Assembly (NCBI GenBank): GCA_028826165.1
Contig: JAPDFW010000126.1
Coordinates: 1-64,000 of the forward strand
From: Anaeramoeba ignava BMAN
Taxonomy: Eukaryota; Protista; Anaeramoebae
Direction: 5' to 3'
Length of the DNA stretch: 64,000 nucleotides
Below, piece after piece: positions 47,015 to 59,762 of the stretch. The position numbers and the translations under genes are program-made. How positions within the stretch are numbered: position 1 is the stretch's first letter; each line of letters opens with the position of its first letter. The notes beneath the pieces are model-generated. The model was not told the origin of the DNA and did not search any database. It was given only the letters and a program-made list of their open reading frames with translations.

Positions 47015-49035
47015 ATGTCAACAAAGAAAGCAGAAAAAAAACCAAAAGAAGAGAAACCAAAAGAAGAGAAACCAAAAGAAGAAAAATCAACAAAAAAAAC
47101 AGCAGCTCCAACAAAAAAACCAACAACTCAAACAAAAAAAGGCAAACAAGCAGATAAAGAGGTTAAAGAAGAAGAAACTCAAACTAGAAAAGAAATTCGT
47201 GAGTTAAATAAACAACTTAAATCAATTCCAAAACCTCCAAAACCAAATCGATCTGAACTTGAAGATTCTCTTAAACCTCTTTATGAAAAATTAGAAAACA
47301 TTCACAAAAAAATTGTACTTAATCATTTCATTTCAAATTTTCGAAAAAAAATTTTCCAAAAAAAAAAAAAAATAATTTATATCATTTTTATTTATTATTT
47401 TTATTTATTCAAAAGAATGAACTCTCTAAACAACAAGAAGAAATCCGAAAAAGACATACATCAATTCTTGATGAAAAAAAACTTGCTTTCGAAAAACTCA
47501 AACAATTAAATGACGACTTAAAAGCTGAAAGAGACAAAAAAACAAAAATTGCTGATAAGATTAAGTCTATTAAAGAATCCCGTAAAAAAAAGTATGAAGA
47601 AATTGATAAATTAAAGAGCAAACTTGAATTCAGAGATGTGAAGAAAATTGATATCGAAATTCGCAAAATTGAAACCAAAATTGAACAACAAACTTTGAAT
47701 CTTTCTCAAGAAAAAGATCTTGTTACAAAAACCAAACAATTAAGAGCAATGAAATCACAATTCTCGTAAATATTTAATTTTAAAATGAATTTTATCACAT
47801 TTCATGTTAATAATTTTTTTTTTGATTTTGATTTTGATTTTTTTTTCAGTGAAATTGATGCAATTTACAAACAAATTGATGAAGATAAAGATACTAATTC
47901 AGCACTTTATAAAAAACTTAAAGAACAAGAAAAAATTGTTAATCAAGCAAAAGAGAAAAGAGATGCTCAAAGAGAAAATGTGAATGCAACATTGCAAAAG
48001 AGAGACGCAATTAATAAAGAATTTGATGCAATTAAATCTAAAATAGGTAAGAACATTTCATTAAATTATAAAATATATTTTTTTCTTGACAATTCAAAAA
48101 TCAATAATTCAAAAATCAAAAGATGAATTCCTCAAACAAGATGAACAAATCCATAAACAACAAGATGATATCTATCATAAATATAATGAATCAAAGAAAA
48201 ATTTCGGAAATTATTTGGATAAATCTGGCGATTTACGTCAAAAGATTCAAGAAAAATTAAAGCAAGAAGATGAAGAACTCGAAAAACTTCGCCAATTAGA
48301 AAAGTAAAAGAAAATAAAATTTTTATTTTTATTTTTATTTCGATATTAAATTTTTTTTTTTTTTAAATTTTTAACAGAGAACAAGACATGAAGTTAATGG
48401 TTCCTTGGGAAAATGAAATCAATCTCTGCCGAAACTTAATCAACTTCTTAACACCAAAAGTTCAATCATATTTATCAAAACAAAACAAAACAACACAACA
48501 AAAAAAGGAAGTGAAAGAAACAAAACCCAAACCAACAGAAAAGCAAGATGACCTTTCAAAACAAATCCAAGAAGGAGAATTCACTGTTCACAAAAAAGAT
48601 GTTTCAAATCGAAAATTTTCTTACTCAAACAAGAAACAACCACAAAAACAAGCACGTCAAAAGAAACAAAAGAAACAAAAGAAACAAAACACAAAAAAAG
48701 CAGTTGATGGAGATTCAACAATAACAATTCCAATTGCCATGTTGAAGGATTTTGAGTTCTTACAAATTGATCCACCGTTATTTATCAAGTCCATCCCAGA
48801 AACTCTTAACAAATTAAAAGAGAAAATCAAATATTATGAAAACACTCCTTTCAATCTCGAAACTCTTTCTCAAACTCCAGACCAAGAAACACCTTCAAAC
48901 GAAAATATCCAGAAAGAAACATCTAAAAAAGTTCAAGTTCAAATTGATATCCCTCAACATGACAACCAAAAACCTCATGCAGTTCTCAAGATTGAATTTT
49001 CTCCTTCCGTTGCTGAAGAATCCCAAAAAAAATGA
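47015..49035 (+). CDS. Coiled-coil protein, BFR1-like; about 5 exons
   Basis: Spliced ORFs starting near 47015, 47415, 47850, 48123 and 48378. IPKPPKPN, LNLSQEKDLV, PWENEINLCRNLINFL and F..LQIDPP....IPETLNKLKEK resemble Bfr1-type proteins. Confidence 0.65.
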
Positions 49036-49395
49036 AAAAGAAACGAAATTTGAAAACAAAAAAGAAAATTTAAATTCAAACAGAATTTTTTCTTTTGATT
49101 TCTTTTTTCTTTTTTTCTTTTTTTCTTTTTTCTTTCTTTCTCATTTTTTTTTTACTTTACTTTACTTTTTTCTTTTCTTTTCTTTTAATACTTTCCAATC
49201 AGAATTGGATTAATTTTTCTCTCTTTTTTTTTTTTCAAATAAATCATTAGATTTACTTGCTTCTCGCAAAATCCAAAAAAAAAAAACAAATTTTATTAAA
49301 GTTTTTTTTAATTAGATTTGAAAATTAAAATTAGATTTGGAAAATTAAAATTAGATTTGGAAATTGAAAAATGGAAAATTGGAATGAAAATTGTT

Positions 49396-52300
49396 TCACA
49401 TCATATTGCATCTTTTATCTTCATCAGTATCAAATTTTAAAGGTGGAAGATCTTGATTGATGTATAAATCTGTTTTGACTGTAAACTTATTCAATAAAAT
49501 ATACATCATTGGACATCTTCTGATACAATCTTCAGTTAATTCTTTGGCAACACTTAAGGGTTGATCAGTTCCAATATCAAAATGAAAAGACATTTTAGGA
49601 ACAACAGGATTTTCATTTAACATCATTTCTCTTGAAATATCTTGATCTAATTGTGATTCAATTTCAATTGATTTAAGACTTAAAGCTCTTAAAGCAGAAG
49701 CATAAGCATAATGAGTTAAAAGACAACAACTTATTCCTCCTAAAAAGTATTGAAGTGGAAATGGTGCACTTGATTCTCCTCCCATCATTTTTCTTGAGTC
49801 TGTTTTCCAAAGTCCAAATTGTGGTTTTCCATCAATGAAAGTTGTATTGAATTGAGGACCAGAAACACTATTACATTCCCAAGCTCCTTCTACTATTTCT
49901 GGTTTAACTGATTCTTGTGGTTTTGCTCTTAATTGTGATTGGAATGTGTAAACTGAATCTAAATTGATGTGATTGATTTTCTTTCCTTTTTTTTGAGGTA
50001 CTTTTTTGTATTGAGTAATTGTTGTTTGTGTTGTTACTGAAACTGCATTTTCTGCTAAAAATACTCCTGGACATTGATCTCTTGCTATTTTAAAAGCATT
50101 TTCAAGTTTATCTTTGTTTTCAAATGAAAATACAGATGTAGATAAGATGATTTGAGTTGCTGGAGGTTTTTGCATATCAAGTCCTGTAATTCTTGTAAAA
50201 TCAAAATCAATTTCACATCTTGTAATAAGTTTATTAAGTTTAATATTCATTAAAGCACAAGTTCTTGCATAAGATCTATTTAAAAAATTAGATATTAAAT
50301 TAAATATTAAATTAAATATTAAATTAAATATTAAATTAAATATTAAATTTAATATTAAATTAAATATTAAATTAAATATTAAAATTAAATATTAAAATTA
50401 AATATTAAATTAAATATTAAATTAAATATTAAATATTAAATTAAATATTAAATTAAATATTAAATTAAATATTAAATTAAATATTAAATTAAATATTAAA
50501 TTAAATATTAAATTAAATATTAAATTAAATATTAAATTAAATATTAAATTAAATATTAAATTAAATATTAAATTAAATATTAAATTAAATATTAAATTAA
50601 ATATTAAATTAAATATTAAATTGATATTAAATTAACATTAAATTAGATATTAAATTAAATATTAAATTAAATATTAAATTAAATATTAAATATTAAATAT
50701 TAAATAAAAAATTAAATTAAATTAAATATTAATTGAATATTAAAAATATTAAATTAAATTAAATATTAAATTAAATATTAAATTAAATATTAAATTAGAT
50801 ATTAAATTGGATATTAAATTAAAATTAAATTAAATATTAAAATTAAATTAAAATTAAATTAAATATTAAAATTAAATTAAATATTAAATAAAATTAAAAT
50901 AAATTAAATTAATATTAAATTAAATATTAAATTAAAAAAATTAAATATTAAATAAATTAAATTAAATATTAAATTAAATATTAAATTAAATATTAAATTA
51001 AATAAAATTAAATATTAAAATTTAAATATTAAATTAAATTTCATTAAATTTAAATATTAAATTAAAATTAAATTAAATATTAAATTAAATATTAAATTAA
51101 ATATTAAATTAAATATTAAATTTAAAATTAAAATTAAATATTAAATTAAATATTAAATTTAAAAATTAAATTAAATATTAAATTAAATATTAAATTAAAT
51201 ATTAAATATTAAATTAAATTAAATATTAAATTAAATATTAAATTAAATATTAAATTAAATATTAAATTAAATATTAAAAAAAAATAAAATTGGATATTAA
51301 AATTAAATATTAAATTAAATATTAAATTAGATATTAAATTAAATATTAAATTGATATTAAATTGATATTAAATTAAATAAGTATTAAATTAAATATTAAA
51401 TTGGATATTAAAATTAAATATTAAATTAATAAAAAATAATATTAAATATTGGATATTAAATTAAATAAATAAATTAAATATTAAATTGGATATAAAATTA
51501 AAATTAGGATATTAAATTAAAGATACAAATTAAATTAAATTGAATATTAAATGGATATAAACAAAAATTGGATATTAAATTAAATATTAAATTAAATATT
51601 AAAATTAAATATTAAATTAAAATTAAATTAATATTAAATTAAATATTAAATTAAATATTAAATTAAGATATTAAATTAAATATTAAATTAAATATTAAAT
51701 TAAATATTAAATTAAATATTAAATTAGATATTAAATTAAATATTAAATTAAATATTAAATTAAATATTAAATTAAATATTAAATTAAATATTAAATTAAA
51801 TATTAAATTAAATATTAAATTAAATATTAAATTGGATATTAAATTAGATATTAAATTGATCTTTTTTAGGGTTATTTTTATAAAGGAAAAAAAGAAGAAC
51901 GAACAAAAAAAAAAATTTTTTTTTTAAATAAAATAAATAAAATAAAATATTTACGAAGCAAGAGATCCTGCAAAAGCTGTTAAGATTATTAATTGATTAT
52001 TTAAAAAAAAAAAAAGGAGAAAATGAAAATTAAATTAAAATTAAAAATAAAAATGCAAAAAAATAAATACCAAAAACACATAAAGCTAAAGGACTTGGTG
52101 CATTTCCAAGACCACCCATTGATTTTGGATTATCTGCTTTGATCTTTTCAACTCCTTGGTCAAAATGAAATGCTAATTTAATTTATAAAAAAAAAAAAAA
52201 GCAAAATTCATTTAAAAAAAAAATAAGAAAATAAAATAAAAGGAAAAAAAAAAGGAATAAGTAAAAAATTATTTAGAAAATTAATTACAAGCATCAAATT

Positions 52301-52427
52301 GAACTTTTCCTTTAAACATCCAATAAAATTCTAAGTTAATTTGTTTTATCGCATTTTCAGGTTTTTGTTTTAATTGAGTTGAAGTTTCCTTTAAATGATC
52401 AACATTCATATGATTAATAAATTGCAT
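49396..52427 (-). CDS. Tandem (double) OsmC-family protein with C-terminal CaaX, copy A; 4 exons, 380 aa
   Basis: Exons 52427-52289, 52172-52071, 51976-51955 (22-bp microexon), 50275-49396. Two repeats of INH.N....P...W...QF..D....GG...AP.PL..(C/S)...CP. Ends in KRCNMM. Confidence 0.85.
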
Positions 52428-54337
52428 TTTTACTAATTAAAAAAAAAGACACAAAATTAAAGTAAAAAAAATAAAATAGAAAGAAAAAAGTGATCAGAAT
52501 AAGAAATAAAAATAAAAAATAATTAAATTATAAATAAAAAAACCAACTGGACAAAATTATCCGCGTTTCAAAATTTAAAAATTAATTTATTGAAGAAGTC
52601 AATTTATTTAAATTAAAAATAAAGATTTATTTTTATTTATTTTGAAAGCTTTAAGATCAAAATAAGGGGATTTTTGCCCACATAAATAAAAAAAAAATTT
52701 TATTTTAATTAAATTTAATTTTTCTTCTTTCTTTTATTTTTATTTTTTATTTTTCTTCTTTTTTTTTTTTTAATTTTTTTTTAATTCATTTTTTTTTTGG
52801 ATATTTTTTTTTTTCAATTAATAAATCTTTTTAATTAAAAAAAAAAATCAAATAATAAAAAAAAAATTAATGTGTGCATAAATAACTTTCTTTTATTTCA
52901 TTCCTTTTTAAAAATTGTAAGAGATTTACTTAATAAATATTTTTTATTTTCTTTTATTTTATTAACGATCAATTTAACAAAAAAATGAATAAAAATAAAA
53001 ATTTTTCAATTAAGATCCATTTAATATAAATAAGTTTAACTAAATTTAAAAAATAAATTAAAATCCACCTCAATATTTTTTTAATTTACTTCTTCTTTTT
53101 AATTAATTTTAGATTTAAATCTAAAAAAAAAATTCAAATCTTTATTCCAATTAAATTAAATCCAAATCCAAATTCAAATCAAATCCAAATATTTAAATTA
53201 AATCAAATCAAATCAAATTAAATCAAATTAAATTAAATCAAATTAAATTAAAATCAAATCAAATTAAATCAATCCAAATCAATCCAAATCAATCCAAATT
53301 AAATCAAATTAAATTAAATCAAATTAAATTAAATTAAATCAAATCAAATCAAATTAAATTAAATCAAATCAAATTAAATTAAATCAAATCAAATCCAAAT
53401 ATTTAAATTGAATTAAATCAAATCAAATTAAATCAAATTAAATTAAATTAAATTAAATTAAATTAAATTAAATTAAATTAAATTAAATTAAATTAAATTA
53501 AAAAATTTAAAAACACGTAATAAAAAGATCTTTCTTTTTTTTCTTATTCTTATTCTTCTTTCATTAGTTCAAAAAACAATCAACAATTAATATTGGCAAA
53601 TTCAGTTCTAATTTTATCAACAATTTAATTAGAATTTATTAAGTTAGTTAAAAAGAATTAGTTGGAAATATATAAAATGAAGAAATTTTTAAAAAAGAAA
53701 ATACCCTATTAAATTTAAAAAGAAAATATAATTTATAAAAGGAGAAAGATCTTTTAATTTAAAAAGAATTTATTTAAAAATTAATCAATACAAAATCTTC
53801 ATAATTTCTCATAAAAATTGGATATAAATCCGTTACATTTTATCAAATTTAAAAAAGTAAAGAAAGAAATTAATTTGTTTATAAATTAAATTATGTAAAG
53901 AAAAGGAAAAAAAGAAAAAGTAAAATTGATCAATAAATTAATTTTAATTTAATTTTATATTTAAATTTATAATTAAAATAATTGTTGATTTTAGTTATTT
54001 TGAAATTAATTTATAATTTTTAAATTTATTTATTTTATAAATAAATAAATCTTTATTTTTATTAACGGGGGCAAAATCCCCCATCAAAAACAAAAAGTAA
54101 ATTAAAAATCAATTCTATTTTTTAATATTTAATTTAATAATTAATTTAAAAATTAATTTAAAATTTAATTTAGTTTGTAATTTAAAATTGTTTTTGTTTT
54201 TTTGTTTTTGTTTTTTTGTTGAGTTGGTTTTTTTTAATTAATTTATTTTTTTTTATTTATTTTTCTGATCACTTTTTTCTTTCCATTTTTTTATTTTTTT
54301 TACTTTGATTTTGTGTCTTTTTTTTTAATTAGTAAAA

Positions 54338-57300
54338 ATGCAATTTATTAATCATATGAATGTTGATCATTTAAAGGAAACTTCAACTCAATTAAAACAA
54401 AAACCTGAAAATGCGATAAAACAAATTAACTTAGAATTTTATTGGATGTTTAAAGGAAAAGTTCAATTTGATGCTTGTAATTAATTTTCTAAATAATTTT
54501 TTACTTATTCCTTTTTTTTTCCCTTTTGTTTTATTTTTCTTATTTTTAAATGAATTTTGCTTTTTTTTTTTTTTATAAATTAAATTAGCATTTCATTTTG
54601 ACCAAGGAGTTGAAAAGATCAAAGCAGATAATCCAAAATCAATGGGTGGTCTTGGAAATGCGCCAAGTCCTTTAGCTTTATGTGTTTTTGGTATTTATTT
54701 TTTTGCATTTTTATTTTTAATTTTAATTTAATTTTCATTTTCTCCTTTTTTTTTTTTTAAATAATCTATTAATAATCTTAACAGCTTTTGCAGGATCTCT
54801 TGCTTCGTAAATATTTTATTTTATTTATTTTATTTAAAAAAAAAATTTTTTTTTTTGTTCGTTCTTCTTTTTTTCCTTTATAAAAATAACCCTAAAAAAA
54901 ATCAATTTAATTAATTACAAGTCATCAAAATATTAAATATTTAATTTAATATCTAATTTAATAATTAATTTAATAATTAATTTAATAATTAATTTAATAT
55001 TTAATTTAATATTTAATTTCCGTTACATTTTATATCTAATTTTATTATAATAATATTCAAATTTAATAATTAAATTAATTTTTTAAATTTAATATTTAAG
55101 GAAAAATATTTAATTTTAATATTGATCAATAATTTAATATTTAATTTATATTTTAATTTTAATTAAAATAATTTTAATTTTTAATTTTTTAATTTTTAAA
55201 TTTTAATATTTAATTTTAATATTTAATAAATTTAAATCCAATTTAATATCTAATTTCAAATATTTAAATTAAATATCAATTCTATTTTTAATATTAATTT
55301 AATATTTAATTTTTAATATTTAATTTAAAATTTAATTTAGTTTGTAATTTAAAATTTAATATTTTGTTTTTTTTATGTTAGTTTTTTTAATTAATTATTT
55401 TTAATATTTAATTTTAATTTTTAATTTAATTTTTAATTTAATATTTAATTTAGTAAATTGCAATTTTTAATTTGATTGTTGATCATTTAAATCCAATATT
55501 AAAACAAATACCAGAAATTTAATATTTAATTTAATATTAAAATTTAATTTTTTTAATATAATATTTAATTTAAATTTAATATTAAATTTAATATTTAATA
55601 TAATATTTAATTTATTTATAAATTTTGCTTTATATAATTAAAATATTTAATTTTAATATCAAAAGCAGATAATCAAATTTAATATTTAATATAATAATAC
55701 CATTTAATTTAATATGTAACCAAATATTTAATTTAATATTTTTAATTTTAATTTATTTTAATTTTAATTTTTAAATATTTTTAATAATTTAACAATTTAT
55801 TATTTTAATTTAAAATTTTTATTATATAATTTTATTTAAATCCAACCCAATATTCTTTTTCCTTTATTTTGGTTTAATATTTCAATTTAATAATTTAAAG
55901 TCATCAAAAATTTAATATAATTAATTTAATATTTAATTTAATTTTTGATTTATTTCAATTTTAATGAATTAATTTAATTTTAATTAAAATAAAATTTAAT
56001 TTAATATCTAATTTAATATTTAATTTAATAATTAAAATTTAATATTTAATTTAATATTTAATTTAATATTTAATTTAATATTTAATTTAATATTTAATTT
56101 AATATTTAATTTAATATTTAATTTAATATTTAATATTTAATATTTAATTTAATATTTAATATTTATTTTAATATTTAATTTTAATATTTAATTTAATATT
56201 TAATTTAATATCCAAATTTAATATTCAAATTTAATATTTAATTTAATATTTAATTTAATAATTAATTTAATATTTAATTTAATATCCAATTTAATATTTA
56301 ATTTAATAATTAATTTAATATTTAATTTAATATTTAATTTAATATTTAATTTAATATTTAATTTAATATTTAATTTAATATTTAATTTAATATCTAATTT
56401 AATATTTAATTTAATATTTAATTTAATATTTAATTTTTATTTATTTAATTTAATATTTATTTAATTTAATATTTAATATTTAATTTAATATTTAATTTAA
56501 TAATTAATTTAATAATTAATTTAATATTTAATTTAATATTTAATTTAATATTTAATTTAATATTTAATTTAATATTTAATTTAATATTTAATTTAATAAT
56601 TAATTTAATATTCAATTTAATATTTAATTTAATATTTAATTTAATATCCAATTTAATATTTAATTTAATATTTAATTTAATATTTAATTTTTTAAATAGA
56701 TCTTATGCAAGAACTTGTGCTTTAATGAATATTAAACTTAATAAACTTATTACAAGATGTGAAATTGATTTTGATTTTACAAGAATTACAGGACTTGATA
56801 TGCAAAAACCTCCAGCAACTCAAATCATCTTATCTACATCTGTATTTTCATTTGAAAACAAAGATAAACTTGAAAATGCTTTTAAAATAGCAAGAGAACA
56901 ATGTCCAGGAGTATTTTTAGCAGAAAATGCAGTTCCAGTAACAACACAAACAACAATTACTCAATACAAAAAAGTACCTCAAAAAAAAGGAAAGAAAATC
57001 AATCACATCAATTTAGATTCAGTTTACACATTCCAATCACAATTAAGAGCAAAACCACAAGAATCAATTAAACCAGAAATAGTAGAAGGAGCTTGGGAAT
57101 GTAATAGTGTTTCTGGTCCTCAATTCAATACAACTTTCATTGATGGAAAACCGCAATTTGGACTTTGGAAAACAGATTCAAGAAAAATGATGGGAGGAGA
57201 ATCAAGTGCACCATTTCCACTTCAATACTTTTTAGGAGGAATAAGTTGTTGTCTTTTAACTCATTATGCTTATGCTTCTGCTTTAAGAGCTTTAAGTCTT

Positions 57301-57579
57301 AAATCAATTGAAATTGAATCACAATTAGATCAAGATATTTCAAGAGAAATGATGTTAAATGAAAATCCTGTTGTTCCTAAAATGTCTTTTCATTTTGATA
57401 TTGGAACTGATCAACCCTTAAGTGTTGCCAAAGAATTAACTGAAGATTGTATCAGAAGATGTCCAATGATGTATATTTTATTGAATAAGTTTACAGTTAA
57501 AACAGATTTATACATCAATCAAGATCTTCCACCTTTAAAATTTGATACTGATGAAGATAAAAGATGCAATATGATGTGA
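54338..57579 (+). CDS. Tandem (double) OsmC-family protein with C-terminal CaaX, copy B; 4 exons, 380 aa
   Basis: Exons 54338-54476, 54589-54690, 54785-54806, 56700-57579 total 1143 nt in frame. Domain 1 has ADNPKSMGGLGNAPSPLALCVFAFAGS..QCP; domain 2 has TDSRKMMGGESSAPFPLQYFLGGISCC..RCP. Confidence 0.87.
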
Positions 57580-57740
57580 AACAATTTTCATTCCAATTTT
57601 CCATTTTCCAATTCCAAATCTAATTTTAATTTTCAAATCTAATTAAAAAAAACTTTAATAAAATTCTTCTTGTTTGGATTTCAAACAAATCTAAAATTTC
57701 ATTTTTATTTTTTTCATTTTTTTCCTTTCATTTTTTTTAA

Positions 57741-59762
57741 ATGAAAAATTATTCTTCTAAAAAACAAAAAGAAAAAGAAAAAAATTCACAATCTAAAATG
57801 AAAATTGATATTGTTAAAATGACAGAAAATGAAAAAGCAAGTCGATCTGCTTATAAAAATATAATTCAAAAAATTTCTCATTTTGAAAATCAAATTTTTG
57901 ATTATTTTTTTGTAATTGGAATAAATTTATCAAATGAATCTTTAGAAAAAAACGAGAAATTTCAACCAAAAATATTAATGAAATTTCCAGAAGACAATAA
58001 AATATTTGAAGATATTGAATCATTTTGTTTTCCAAATGGAATTGAAACCAAAAAAATGGAGAAGAATCAATTGAATGGAGATTCAACTAAATTAGGAAAT
58101 GAAGAGCATTTCATTTTTTCCTTAACAACACCAGAAGGAATTATGTTTGGATTTTGTGTTTCTGTTAATACCTTAGTTGGTGTTTTTCCTTCTTTTATTC
58201 CAAATATTTCACAATTTCAAAAACCAATCAAAAACTTGATTCAAACAAAAATTTGTTATTGTATTCTAAGCAAACAACCCTATTATAAATTGCAATTTGA
58301 TTTGATTCACTCACTTATTTTTTTGGAAAATCTTCGTTTTAAAACCTCATCATTATTTTCAAACCCAAAAATACAAGATAATTTTATATTTACTCTTCAA
58401 ACAAATCGAAGAAGTATTTCAAGTTCTTTTAAAGAATCCGATCTTGATTTGAACCAATTTACTAATATTAATCAATCTTATTTGCAGAACAATTCTGAGA
58501 ATGAATCAATGAATATTCTTGAAAAGTGTCATAGCATCAAATTTGGTTTCCAGCAAAATTACATTTCAATTCCTTTAGGAGAAAAATTAAAGAATTTAAT
58601 TTTCCAAGTTCCTAATCATGAATATAAATTATATGGGGAATGGGGAATGGAAATATTATTCACTTATCTCCATCCGTATCATATTATAACAATAATATCT
58701 GAAATATTATTAGAGCACTCTGTGATTTTTATTAGTGAAAATGCAACGCTACTTTCATCAGTGATGTAAATTGAAATCAAAATCAATATAAAAATTTAAT
58801 TCAATATTCAATAAATATCTTCTCCTTTTTTTAGTTATTCAATCCTCTCTTTAATCCACCCTTTTAAATGGCAAGGTGTTTTTATTCCAATTCTTCCTTC
58901 AAATTTATTATCATTACTTGATTCTCCAGTTCCAATAATTTCAGGAATTTCTCAAAAAGTTTCATTTTCTCCTAAAAATTCAGCATTTATTGTTTTTGAT
59001 ATTGATAAAGATATTTTAGAAACTATTCAAAACCGATTCTCAACACCAAAAAAGAATTCAACCGTTTTTGAAATTCCAAAAATTCCTCATTTTGATATTT
59101 TATTTAAAACTTTAAATTTTTTATCCTATTGTTTTCGTGCTAAAAATAGGACTCCATTAGAAAATAATTTATCTCCTCAAATACAAAAAAAACCAAGAGA
59201 AAAAAGAAAGTCTCACATTTTTGAAATCAATCCAATTATTAATTTCTCAGAAATTTTTATTGATGAAGAAATTTTTAATCTCAAAAGAATCCAAAAAATG
59301 AATCAAAATTCAAATCAAAATCAAAATTCAAATCAAAAAAATTCAAATCAAAATCAAAATTCAAATCAAAATCAAAATCAAAATGATTTCTCAAAAAAAA
59401 TCACTTCAATTTTGAAAGAATGTTATGAATCTATAACAAATATCCCAGATGATCCAAATTCAATTCATATCAAAAATCTAAATGATTATATCAATATAAA
59501 TTCAATTAAAATTTTAATTAAAAATACTTTGAAAATTTTTAATTTATATTATTCTAATATGTTTGAGAACTTTCGTGTTCATACTGCATCAGATATTTCA
59601 GATCCAAAAGATCCAATAATGATATTTATTAAAGAAAGCTTTTTGACTTCTCTTCCAAATTGTGATAAAGGTTTTATGGAATTATTTCTTCAAACTCAAA
59701 TGTTCCAAGTTTTTTGTGATAAAAGAATTAAAAAAGAGATTAATTTATTAACAAAAATTTAA
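57741..59762 (+). CDS. DENN-domain protein (putative Rab GEF); 2 exons
   Basis: Exons 57741-58765 and 58835-59762. FDYFFVIG, FCFPNG, FIFSLT..FGFC, CYCILS, LLEHSVIF, HPFKWQGVFIPILP..LLDSPVP, FLQTQMF. Confidence 0.9.

Follow-up and report, generated by a model that had tools for sequence, protein, structure and literature searches.

A tandem OsmC-fold protein of Anaeramoeba ignava in which a C-terminal farnesylation signal is conserved together with a cysteine pair

Introduction

The window analysed here, that is, the whole stretch of 64,000 nucleotides (nt) from positions 1 to 64,000 of contig JAPDFW010000126.1 of the protist Anaeramoeba ignava BMAN (GenBank assembly GCA_028826165.1), was found to contain two near-identical genes for a 380-residue protein, in which two OsmC units follow one another in a single chain that ends in a CaaX box. 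The N-terminal unit (N-half) lacks the canonical peroxidatic cysteine and the C-terminal unit (C-half) keeps both the peroxidatic and the resolving cysteine. A C-a-a-M end is present in 8 of the 8 family members that carry this cysteine pair (six paralogues in A. ignava and two proteins in A. flamelloides). The genes are already annotated in GenBank, and neither the fold nor the anchor signal is new in itself; the novelty lies in their combination, in the retention of the anchor together with the cysteines, and in a fusion to RGS domains.

To survive pulses of oxygen, anaerobic protists use enzymes acquired from prokaryotes, and the fitting of such enzymes to eukaryotic cells is seldom visible. 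The present gene makes three steps of it visible: the fusion of a homodimer into a single chain with decay of one site, the gain of spliceosomal introns that include a 22-nt microexon, and the addition of a lipid-anchor signal that only eukaryotes use, kept only while the catalytic cysteines were kept.

Gene models and transcript evidence

A preliminary description, made from the sequence, had read positions 49289-57665 as one spliced gene of four exons. The gene model was confirmed, but the span also holds a second copy on the minus strand, so that it consists of two head-to-head copies (A and B) of one gene of about 3.3 kb, with about 1.7 kb between them. The window is strongly AT-rich (G+C about 7-30%), and the list of open reading frames (ORFs) contains a frame of 284 amino acids (aa) twice, at 49396-50250 (-) and 56725-57579 (+), and a 48-aa frame twice, at 52281-52427 (-) and 54338-54484 (+). 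Reading of the sequence, checked by script, gave four exons per gene with identical layout in the two copies (Table 1). The introns of both begin with GTA and finish with AG, all three introns of copy B being of the GT...AG type. Of the 1143 coding bases, 7 distinguish the copies (three non-synonymous and four synonymous changes, which give a ratio of non-synonymous to synonymous rates of 0.19 on few sites), so that the proteins differ in 3 residues; the genes are recent duplicates in divergent orientation.

Spliced copy B encodes 380 aa that agree letter for letter with GenBank KAJ5067503.1 ('osmc family peroxiredoxin'; P0001 below). The same protein occurs as a 'complete' TransDecoder ORF in the EukProt set for A. 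ignava, which was taken as a transcriptome assembly from its record name. Since this ORF is independent of the genome annotation, its identity to P0001 lends RNA-level support to the splicing as well as to the CNMM end. A read run whose kind is not stated (X1) contained 0.33 of the sampled words; exons make up the same fraction of the stretch (1143 of 3351 bases), which suggests that this run is a transcriptome. The gene model was searched exon by exon, and thereafter the database protein P0001 was used as the query. Exon 4 alone contains two stretches that match Pfam OsmC, and a word search with it returned the 380-aa A. ignava protein at 100% identity, together with paralogues of 379 and 382 aa.

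Two OsmC units in a single chain

The two tandem OsmC domains that had been predicted were recovered with HMMER. The Pfam OsmC model (PF02566) matched the whole protein with 69 bits, and each half alone scored above the gathering score of 27.5 (38.2 and 34.3 bits). Structure prediction with AlphaFold2, based on an alignment of 51 sequences, gave a model with a mean predicted local distance difference test score (pLDDT) of 94.9 and a predicted template modelling score of 0.92. The last strand of the model finishes at residue 360, and residues 375-380 have a pLDDT below 50 and are disordered. Among solved structures the best match is GSU2788 (PDB 2opl), with a Foldseek template modelling (TM) score of 0.82-0.83; VIA gave a Z of 12.9 for the same structure over residues 1-173, with a root-mean-square deviation of 2.0 over 171 residues. 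Over 30 chains of Ohr and OsmC proteins, each some 140 residues long, aligned at Z values of about 8-10 with model residues ~24-362. Because these chains align across both halves of the model, one chain is predicted to reproduce the intertwined OsmC dimer as a pseudo-dimer, the arrangement that the preliminary description had anticipated. By profile and predicted fold, P0001 is a member of the OsmC superfamily.

Two groups of known proteins serve as a comparison. GSU2788 and its bacterial relatives of ~174 aa resemble each half in consisting of a unit of ~175 residues that includes an N-terminal strand-helix extension, and they are linked to P0001 by a sequence match (E 6.6e-5) and by a common Cys...Cys(P) pattern; they differ in being single-domain proteins that form homodimers in crystals, with a third conserved cysteine and with neither introns nor CaaX. 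The Ohr/OsmC thiol peroxidases, such as Xylella Ohr (1zb9) and E. coli OsmC (1qwi), have the same intertwined dimer fold with two cysteines on facing helices. They are, however, only 11-19% identical to P0001, are built from two chains with two active sites where P0001 is a single chain, and carry a glutamate after a conserved proline where P0001 has leucine.

A search of 1.84 billion representatives with HMMER returned full-length relatives in Anaeramoeba only (four matches below 1e-30 and more divergent ones). The A. ignava genome contains seven tandem-OsmC genes, namely six distinct paralogues and the near-identical second copy in the window. The two A. flamelloides proteins P0007 and P0099 have an RGS domain N-terminal to the tandem module, and other paralogues of that species have long coiled-coil N-terminal regions. 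P0007 carries the cysteine pair and a CaaX box; P0099 carries neither.

Conservation of the cysteines

All of the residues named in the preliminary description were found in the spliced protein. The N-half contains Cys78 (in LALC), Ser85 at the canonical peroxidatic position (FAGS), and Cys156 (QCP), and the C-half contains Cys272 (the second cysteine of ISCC) and Cys342 (RCP). The chain closes with KRCNMM, in which Cys377 is the cysteine of the CaaX box, followed by TGA. An alignment of the cysteine positions in all Anaeramoeba halves and 20 bacterial single-domain relatives revealed three cysteines that are conserved in the bacterial proteins: one that lies 7 residues before the peroxidatic cysteine, the peroxidatic cysteine itself, and the resolving cysteine in RCP. 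At the peroxidatic position of the N-half every Anaeramoeba member has Ser, Leu, Met, Gln or another residue that is not Cys, and the resolving cysteine of this half has likewise been lost in several paralogues. All six A. ignava paralogues, and two proteins of A. flamelloides, keep the peroxidatic and resolving cysteines of the C-half. Cys272 and Cys342 are invariant in 8/8 CaaX-bearing members, down to identities of 22-31%.

Some members of families of the OsmC-related (seleno)protein type carry selenocysteine at a cysteine position. Selenocysteine was considered for the present genes and rejected: the cysteine codons are TGT, and no in-frame TGA occurs at the cysteine positions.

A conserved CaaX box

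The six A. ignava paralogues end in CNMM (both copies in the window), CNLM, CFFM, CFLM, CRLM and CSMM, and the two A. flamelloides proteins in CDIM (P0006) and CSLM (P0007). Beyond these ends the tails have only a few Lys or Arg residues in common; the a2 position is mostly aliphatic. In the four A. flamelloides paralogues that lack the CaaX box, the peroxidatic cysteine of the C-half is lost in 4/4 and the resolving cysteine in 3/4. The retention of CaaX together with the cysteine pair is a pattern rather than a statistic, at most two independent losses being involved. A set of 157 fetched proteins, mostly prokaryotic OsmC-like relatives, contained only two outside Anaeramoeba with a cysteine at position -4, and neither of these ends in Met. 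A chance CaaX was rejected on the conserved -4 cysteine and final methionine in divergent tails, and on control proteins in which the two do not occur together.

The enzymes that such a signal calls for are encoded in the A. ignava genome. Three prenyltransferase beta subunits were found, of which one best matches the farnesyltransferase (FTase) beta subunit (on contig C65) and one the beta subunit of Rab geranylgeranyltransferase, and prenyltransferase alpha-subunit repeats, ICMT, and Rce1-like proteases are also present; Ste24 was not found in this genome. The CaaX box with X=M of the preliminary description is a conserved feature, and the farnesylation machinery is encoded. The ends resemble those of farnesylated eukaryotic proteins such as Ras, Rheb, lamin B, and Ydj1 in the -4 cysteine, the final methionine, the mostly aliphatic a2 residue, and the flexible linker, and differ from them in their cargo, which is here a redox-enzyme fold of bacterial origin. 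Judged from its sequence, the flexible tail of ~20 residues carries a conserved signal for farnesylation at its end, and the protein probably works at a membrane.

At the other end of the chain, the alignment with the bacterial proteins begins at residue 3-4, opposite residue 3 of the latter, and there is no N-terminal extension; an organelle targeting peptide was rejected on these grounds. The arrangement differs from that of two other OsmC proteins of metamonads. The hydrogenosomal OsmC of Trichomonas vaginalis is a single-domain matrix protein that is reduced by lipoyl proteins (Nyvltova et al. 2016, via PMC11316075; PMC10648710), and a single-domain OsmC with a targeting sequence has been reported for Anaeramoeba (bioRxiv 10.64898/2026.04.11.717937). 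These single-domain proteins of the organelle matrix, reduced by lipoyl proteins, share with P0001 a prokaryotic-type OsmC, an anaerobic metamonad host, and a proposed role in peroxide defence, and P0001 differs from them in being doubled, in lacking a presequence, and in bearing a CaaX box. Four single-domain OsmC genes, with both cysteines, were also observed elsewhere in the A. ignava assembly (G000 contig C87, 251344-257371; L001-L004), arranged head-to-tail on the minus strand about 2 kb apart, and are probably the organelle-type OsmC genes of the Anaeramoeba literature.

Origin of the tandem and of its introns

The gene had been proposed to be laterally acquired and then internally duplicated. 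The prokaryotic type of the protein was confirmed, the nearest single-domain relatives being bacterial (for example from Anaerolineae, Gemmatimonadota, and Dehalococcoidia). The single-domain subfamily is widespread in bacteria and was also found in Rokubacteria, Thermodesulfobacteriota, and Actinomycetota, a taxonomy that rests on source names. Quick maximum-likelihood trees, with support from the Shimodaira-Hasegawa-like approximate likelihood ratio test (SH-aLRT), placed the N-halves of both species in one clade (95) and the C-halves in another (94-96), with mirrored internal topologies. Because both clades span the two species and mirror one another, the tandem ancestor predates the split between A. 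ignava and A. flamelloides, and both of its halves were kept.

The timing of the duplication relative to the transfer is one part of the proposal that fared less well. The best tree separates all 22 Anaeramoeba halves from the other sequences by a branch with an SH-aLRT of 44, and an internal duplication within the eukaryote lineage, which is the answer of this tree, is weakly supported. The alternative, in which the prokaryotic gene was a tandem double-OsmC before its uptake, is a tangible possibility that we nevertheless put well short of an even chance. Single-chain tandems do exist in Promethearchaeota, in Chitinophagales, and on unassigned metagenome or assembly contigs, and Thermomicrobiota, Actinomycetota, and Verrucomicrobiota are represented in the ESM Atlas by clusters of 363-387 aa that resemble the whole protein, one of which superposes on the whole model (TM 0.84/0.87). 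Moreover, the two halves of P0001 are 26% identical and no nearer to each other than to bacterial single-domain proteins. Against such an uptake stand the weakly supported branch and the finding that separate duplications gave rise to the Asgard and to the Chitinophagales tandems, which do not group with the Anaeramoeba halves. The two units of the Promethearchaeota tandems of 455 and 581 aa are closest to each other and have a single-domain sister, which points to an independent duplication; the tandem loci L032-L034 on Promethearchaeota contigs likewise encode 455-aa proteins. These archaeal tandems are asymmetric too, but it is the C-half that has lost the peroxidatic cysteine, as opposed to the N-half in Anaeramoeba. 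The prokaryotic tandems (P0010 and P0011 of Promethearchaeota, P0070 of Chitinophagales, and the Atlas clusters) thus share with P0001 the two OsmC units per chain, and none of them has a CaaX box.

No description of a tandem or prenylated OsmC, or of an Anaeramoeba OsmC of this architecture, was found in the literature. The statement that no prenylated tandem OsmC had been described therefore holds for the combination, but tandem OsmC proteins without prenylation exist in prokaryotes.

The introns, previously suggested to have been gained, are spliceosomal, and their positions recur among the paralogues. The intron before residue 89 is common to all five database paralogues, and the 22-nt microexon (an 8-codon piece) could be followed to two other loci of the family, that of P0005 (L023) and that of the sixth paralogue on contig C60 (L025). 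Since these positions are shared, the introns predate the expansion of the family.

Proposed mechanism and alternatives

The reading that we favour, and that we consider about evenly balanced between right and wrong, is that of a cytosol-made, farnesyl-anchored, one-site OsmC-fold thiol protein that would act on hydrophobic hydroperoxides at a membrane. The absence of an N-terminal extension, and hence of an organelle presequence, is consistent with synthesis in the cytosol. Cys377 would be farnesylated by the encoded farnesyltransferase, after which the Rce1-like and ICMT enzymes would trim and methylate the modified end. The protein would then sit at a membrane, on its cytosolic side, where the lone remaining cysteine pair would reduce lipid or other organic hydroperoxides, and the degenerate N-half would serve only as a structural partner, as the OsmC active site needs the dimer interface. 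Lipoyl proteins, which serve hydrogenosomal OsmC, are unlikely as the reductant. A membrane-bound hydroperoxide reductase of this kind would offer organisms without systems of the glutathione-peroxidase type a new way to repair lipid peroxides. The present gene also provides the uncharacterised and widespread bacterial GSU2788-like subfamily with a function that can be tested.

Several observations weigh against this reading. The closest family of P0001, as judged from sequence, is the GSU2788-like group and not Ohr or OsmC proper. Neither half matched the TIGR03561 (Ohr) or TIGR03562 (OsmC) models at E 0.1 or better, and the best NCBIfam match, NF041052 ('OsmC-related (seleno)protein'), was obtained with 51.7 and 63.4 bits at a cut-off of 95; the nearest prokaryotic relatives themselves score 17-22 bits against the Ohr/OsmC models, with cut-offs of 86-89. 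In the HMMER alignment to Ohr 6mjn, PLQ stands opposite PEQ, which puts Leu at the catalytic Glu, and a hydrophobic residue occupies this position throughout the GSU2788-like subfamily. No conserved Arg was seen in the aligned N-terminal region, the Ohr alignments stopping short of the Arg loop. The third bacterial cysteine is replaced by Phe in the C-half of the A. ignava paralogues, which may signal a different chemistry. The literature yielded no member of the GSU2788-like subfamily with a measured activity, so that the peroxidase activity is something that we infer. A farnesyl group alone binds membranes weakly, and the CaaX-bearing tails have only 2-4 basic residues, interspersed with acidic ones. 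Furthermore, the tandem OsmC architecture as such is not unique to Anaeramoeba, which weakens the earlier interpretation, and the RGS and coiled-coil fusions in A. flamelloides fit signalling as well as detoxification.

This last point bears on the first functional alternative, in which the protein is a membrane-tethered redox or peroxide sensor and not a bulk detoxifier, with oxidation of the cysteine pair altering its conformation or passing on a disulfide and so coupling membrane oxidation to signalling. We consider such a role rather unlikely, although it draws on several of the same observations: the tandem module of P0007, with its cysteine pair and CaaX, follows an RGS domain, other paralogues have coiled-coil regions, a single active site in each chain, with little divergence specific to individual copies, would suit a regulator, and the catalytic Glu of the efficient Ohr/OsmC peroxidases is absent. 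However, the A. ignava proteins are without any output domain, seven gene copies suggest the need for dosage that is typical of a scavenger, and P0099, the second RGS-fused paralogue, has lost both the cysteines and the CaaX box. More doubtful still is the specific form of this idea, a farnesyl-anchored sensor of membrane (lipid) peroxidation in which one half would be a dedicated regulatory or partner surface, wired in A. flamelloides to heterotrimeric G-protein signalling through RGS. A sensor fused to RGS would link membrane oxidation to G-protein signalling and, if wired and anchored in this manner, would equip an anaerobe with a membrane-bound alarm for oxygen or peroxide.

It is improbable that the protein is a non-catalytic binder of lipids or other hydrophobic ligands, or a membrane scaffold, with the cysteines as structural leftovers. 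The persistence of four A. flamelloides paralogues without the cysteine pair, the missing Ohr/OsmC Glu of the subfamily, and the position of a bacterial relative in a conserved gene row beside an RND efflux transporter would suit such a protein; the invariance of Cys272 and Cys342 in the divergent CaaX-bearing members argues against it, as does the name of the best NCBIfam match, which would speak for redox chemistry if selenocysteine-bearing members of such families are a guide. A soluble cytosolic thiol peroxidase, whose C-terminal cysteine would be a mobile redox-active tail cysteine or part of a motif for protein-protein contacts, has an equally slim chance, for although the long disordered tail could reach the active site and the second membrane signal is weak, the cysteine always lies exactly at -4 and the final residue is always Met in an otherwise variable tail, which follows the rule of FTase and not the needs of a resolving cysteine, and FTase, Rce1-like, and ICMT enzymes are all encoded.

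Features of the gene pair and neighbouring genes

Table 1. Coordinates of the two tandem-OsmC genes and of the inverted duplication in the window.
Feature	Positions	Strand	Remarks
Copy B (KAJ5067503.1 = P0001), exon 1	54338..54476	+	ATG at 54338
Copy B, exon 2	54589..54690	+	carries Cys78 codon, 54681-54683
Copy B, exon 3 (22-nt microexon)	54785..54806	+	Ser85 codon, 54796-54798; canonical peroxidatic position
Copy B, exon 4	56700..57579	+	remainder of N-half OsmC, linker, entire C-half OsmC, tail, TGA
Copy B, Cys272 codon	57250..57252	+	canonical peroxidatic Cys position of C-half
Copy B, Cys342 codon (RCP)	57460..57462	+	resolving Cys position of C-half
Copy B, CaaX box CNMM	57565..57576	+	tail residues 375-380, pLDDT <50
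Copy A (KAJ5067502.1 = P0150), exon 1	52289..52427	-	ATG at 52427
Copy A, exon 2	52071..52172	-	
Copy A, exon 3 (22-nt microexon)	51955..51976	-	
Copy A, exon 4 including stop	49396..50275	-	CaaX codons, 49399-49410
Inverted duplication, left arm	49342..52547		whole gene A and ~120 bp upstream of its ATG
Inverted duplication, right arm	54218..57633		whole gene B
Spacer between arms	52548..54217		between divergent copies; AT-rich, short repeats

The arms of the inverted duplication were delimited with a repeat finder, which paired 49342-50388 with 56587-57633 at 98% and, through further pairs, reached 52547 and 54218 (98%, 94%, and 86% for the pairs I1, I2, and I3, respectively). The spacer is the presumed promoter region of both copies. 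Intron 3 measures 1893 nt in copy B (54807-56699) and 1679 nt in copy A (50276-51954), and consists in both mostly of short AT-rich tandem repeats with units like TAATTTAATATT; its length differs by 214 nt between the copies, although their exons are ~99% identical.

A second divergent pair of tandem-OsmC genes was found on contig C60 of the same assembly (G000), at 1613894-1614703 (-; L026) and 1644724-1645533 (+; L025). These genes are ~31 kb apart and 77% identical, and the product of L025, which ends in CFLM, is absent from the database matches.

In A. flamelloides, a Rheb GTPase gene directly adjoins a coiled-coil tandem-OsmC gene (P0155, P0055, and P0156). One assembly of this species annotates the two neighbours as a single 765-aa Ras-OsmC protein, which is likely a merged gene model, though the adjacency recurs.

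Among the bacterial relatives, a metagenome contig (L028) carries a gene for an unknown protein of ~712 aa, followed by a 179-aa OsmC-like protein and a transporter of the resistance-nodulation-division (RND) family (ACR_tran), with gaps of 8-20 nt. The gene lengths and spacings of L028 are repeated on three shorter contigs (through L031). Two further relatives, P0246 and P0031, are fused to a rhodanese domain or an Fe-S assembly (FeS_assembly_P) domain. The fusions and the gene row together are a hint of thiol or sulfur chemistry near membranes.

The gene pair is flanked in the window by two ORFs. A Lys/Gln-rich ORF of 215 aa adjoins copy A at 48388-49035 (+) and has no Pfam match. The ORF just downstream of copy B, at 57741-58769 (+), contains uDENN and DENN domains and therefore belongs to a protein of the Rab guanine nucleotide exchange factor type, of which further exons probably follow.

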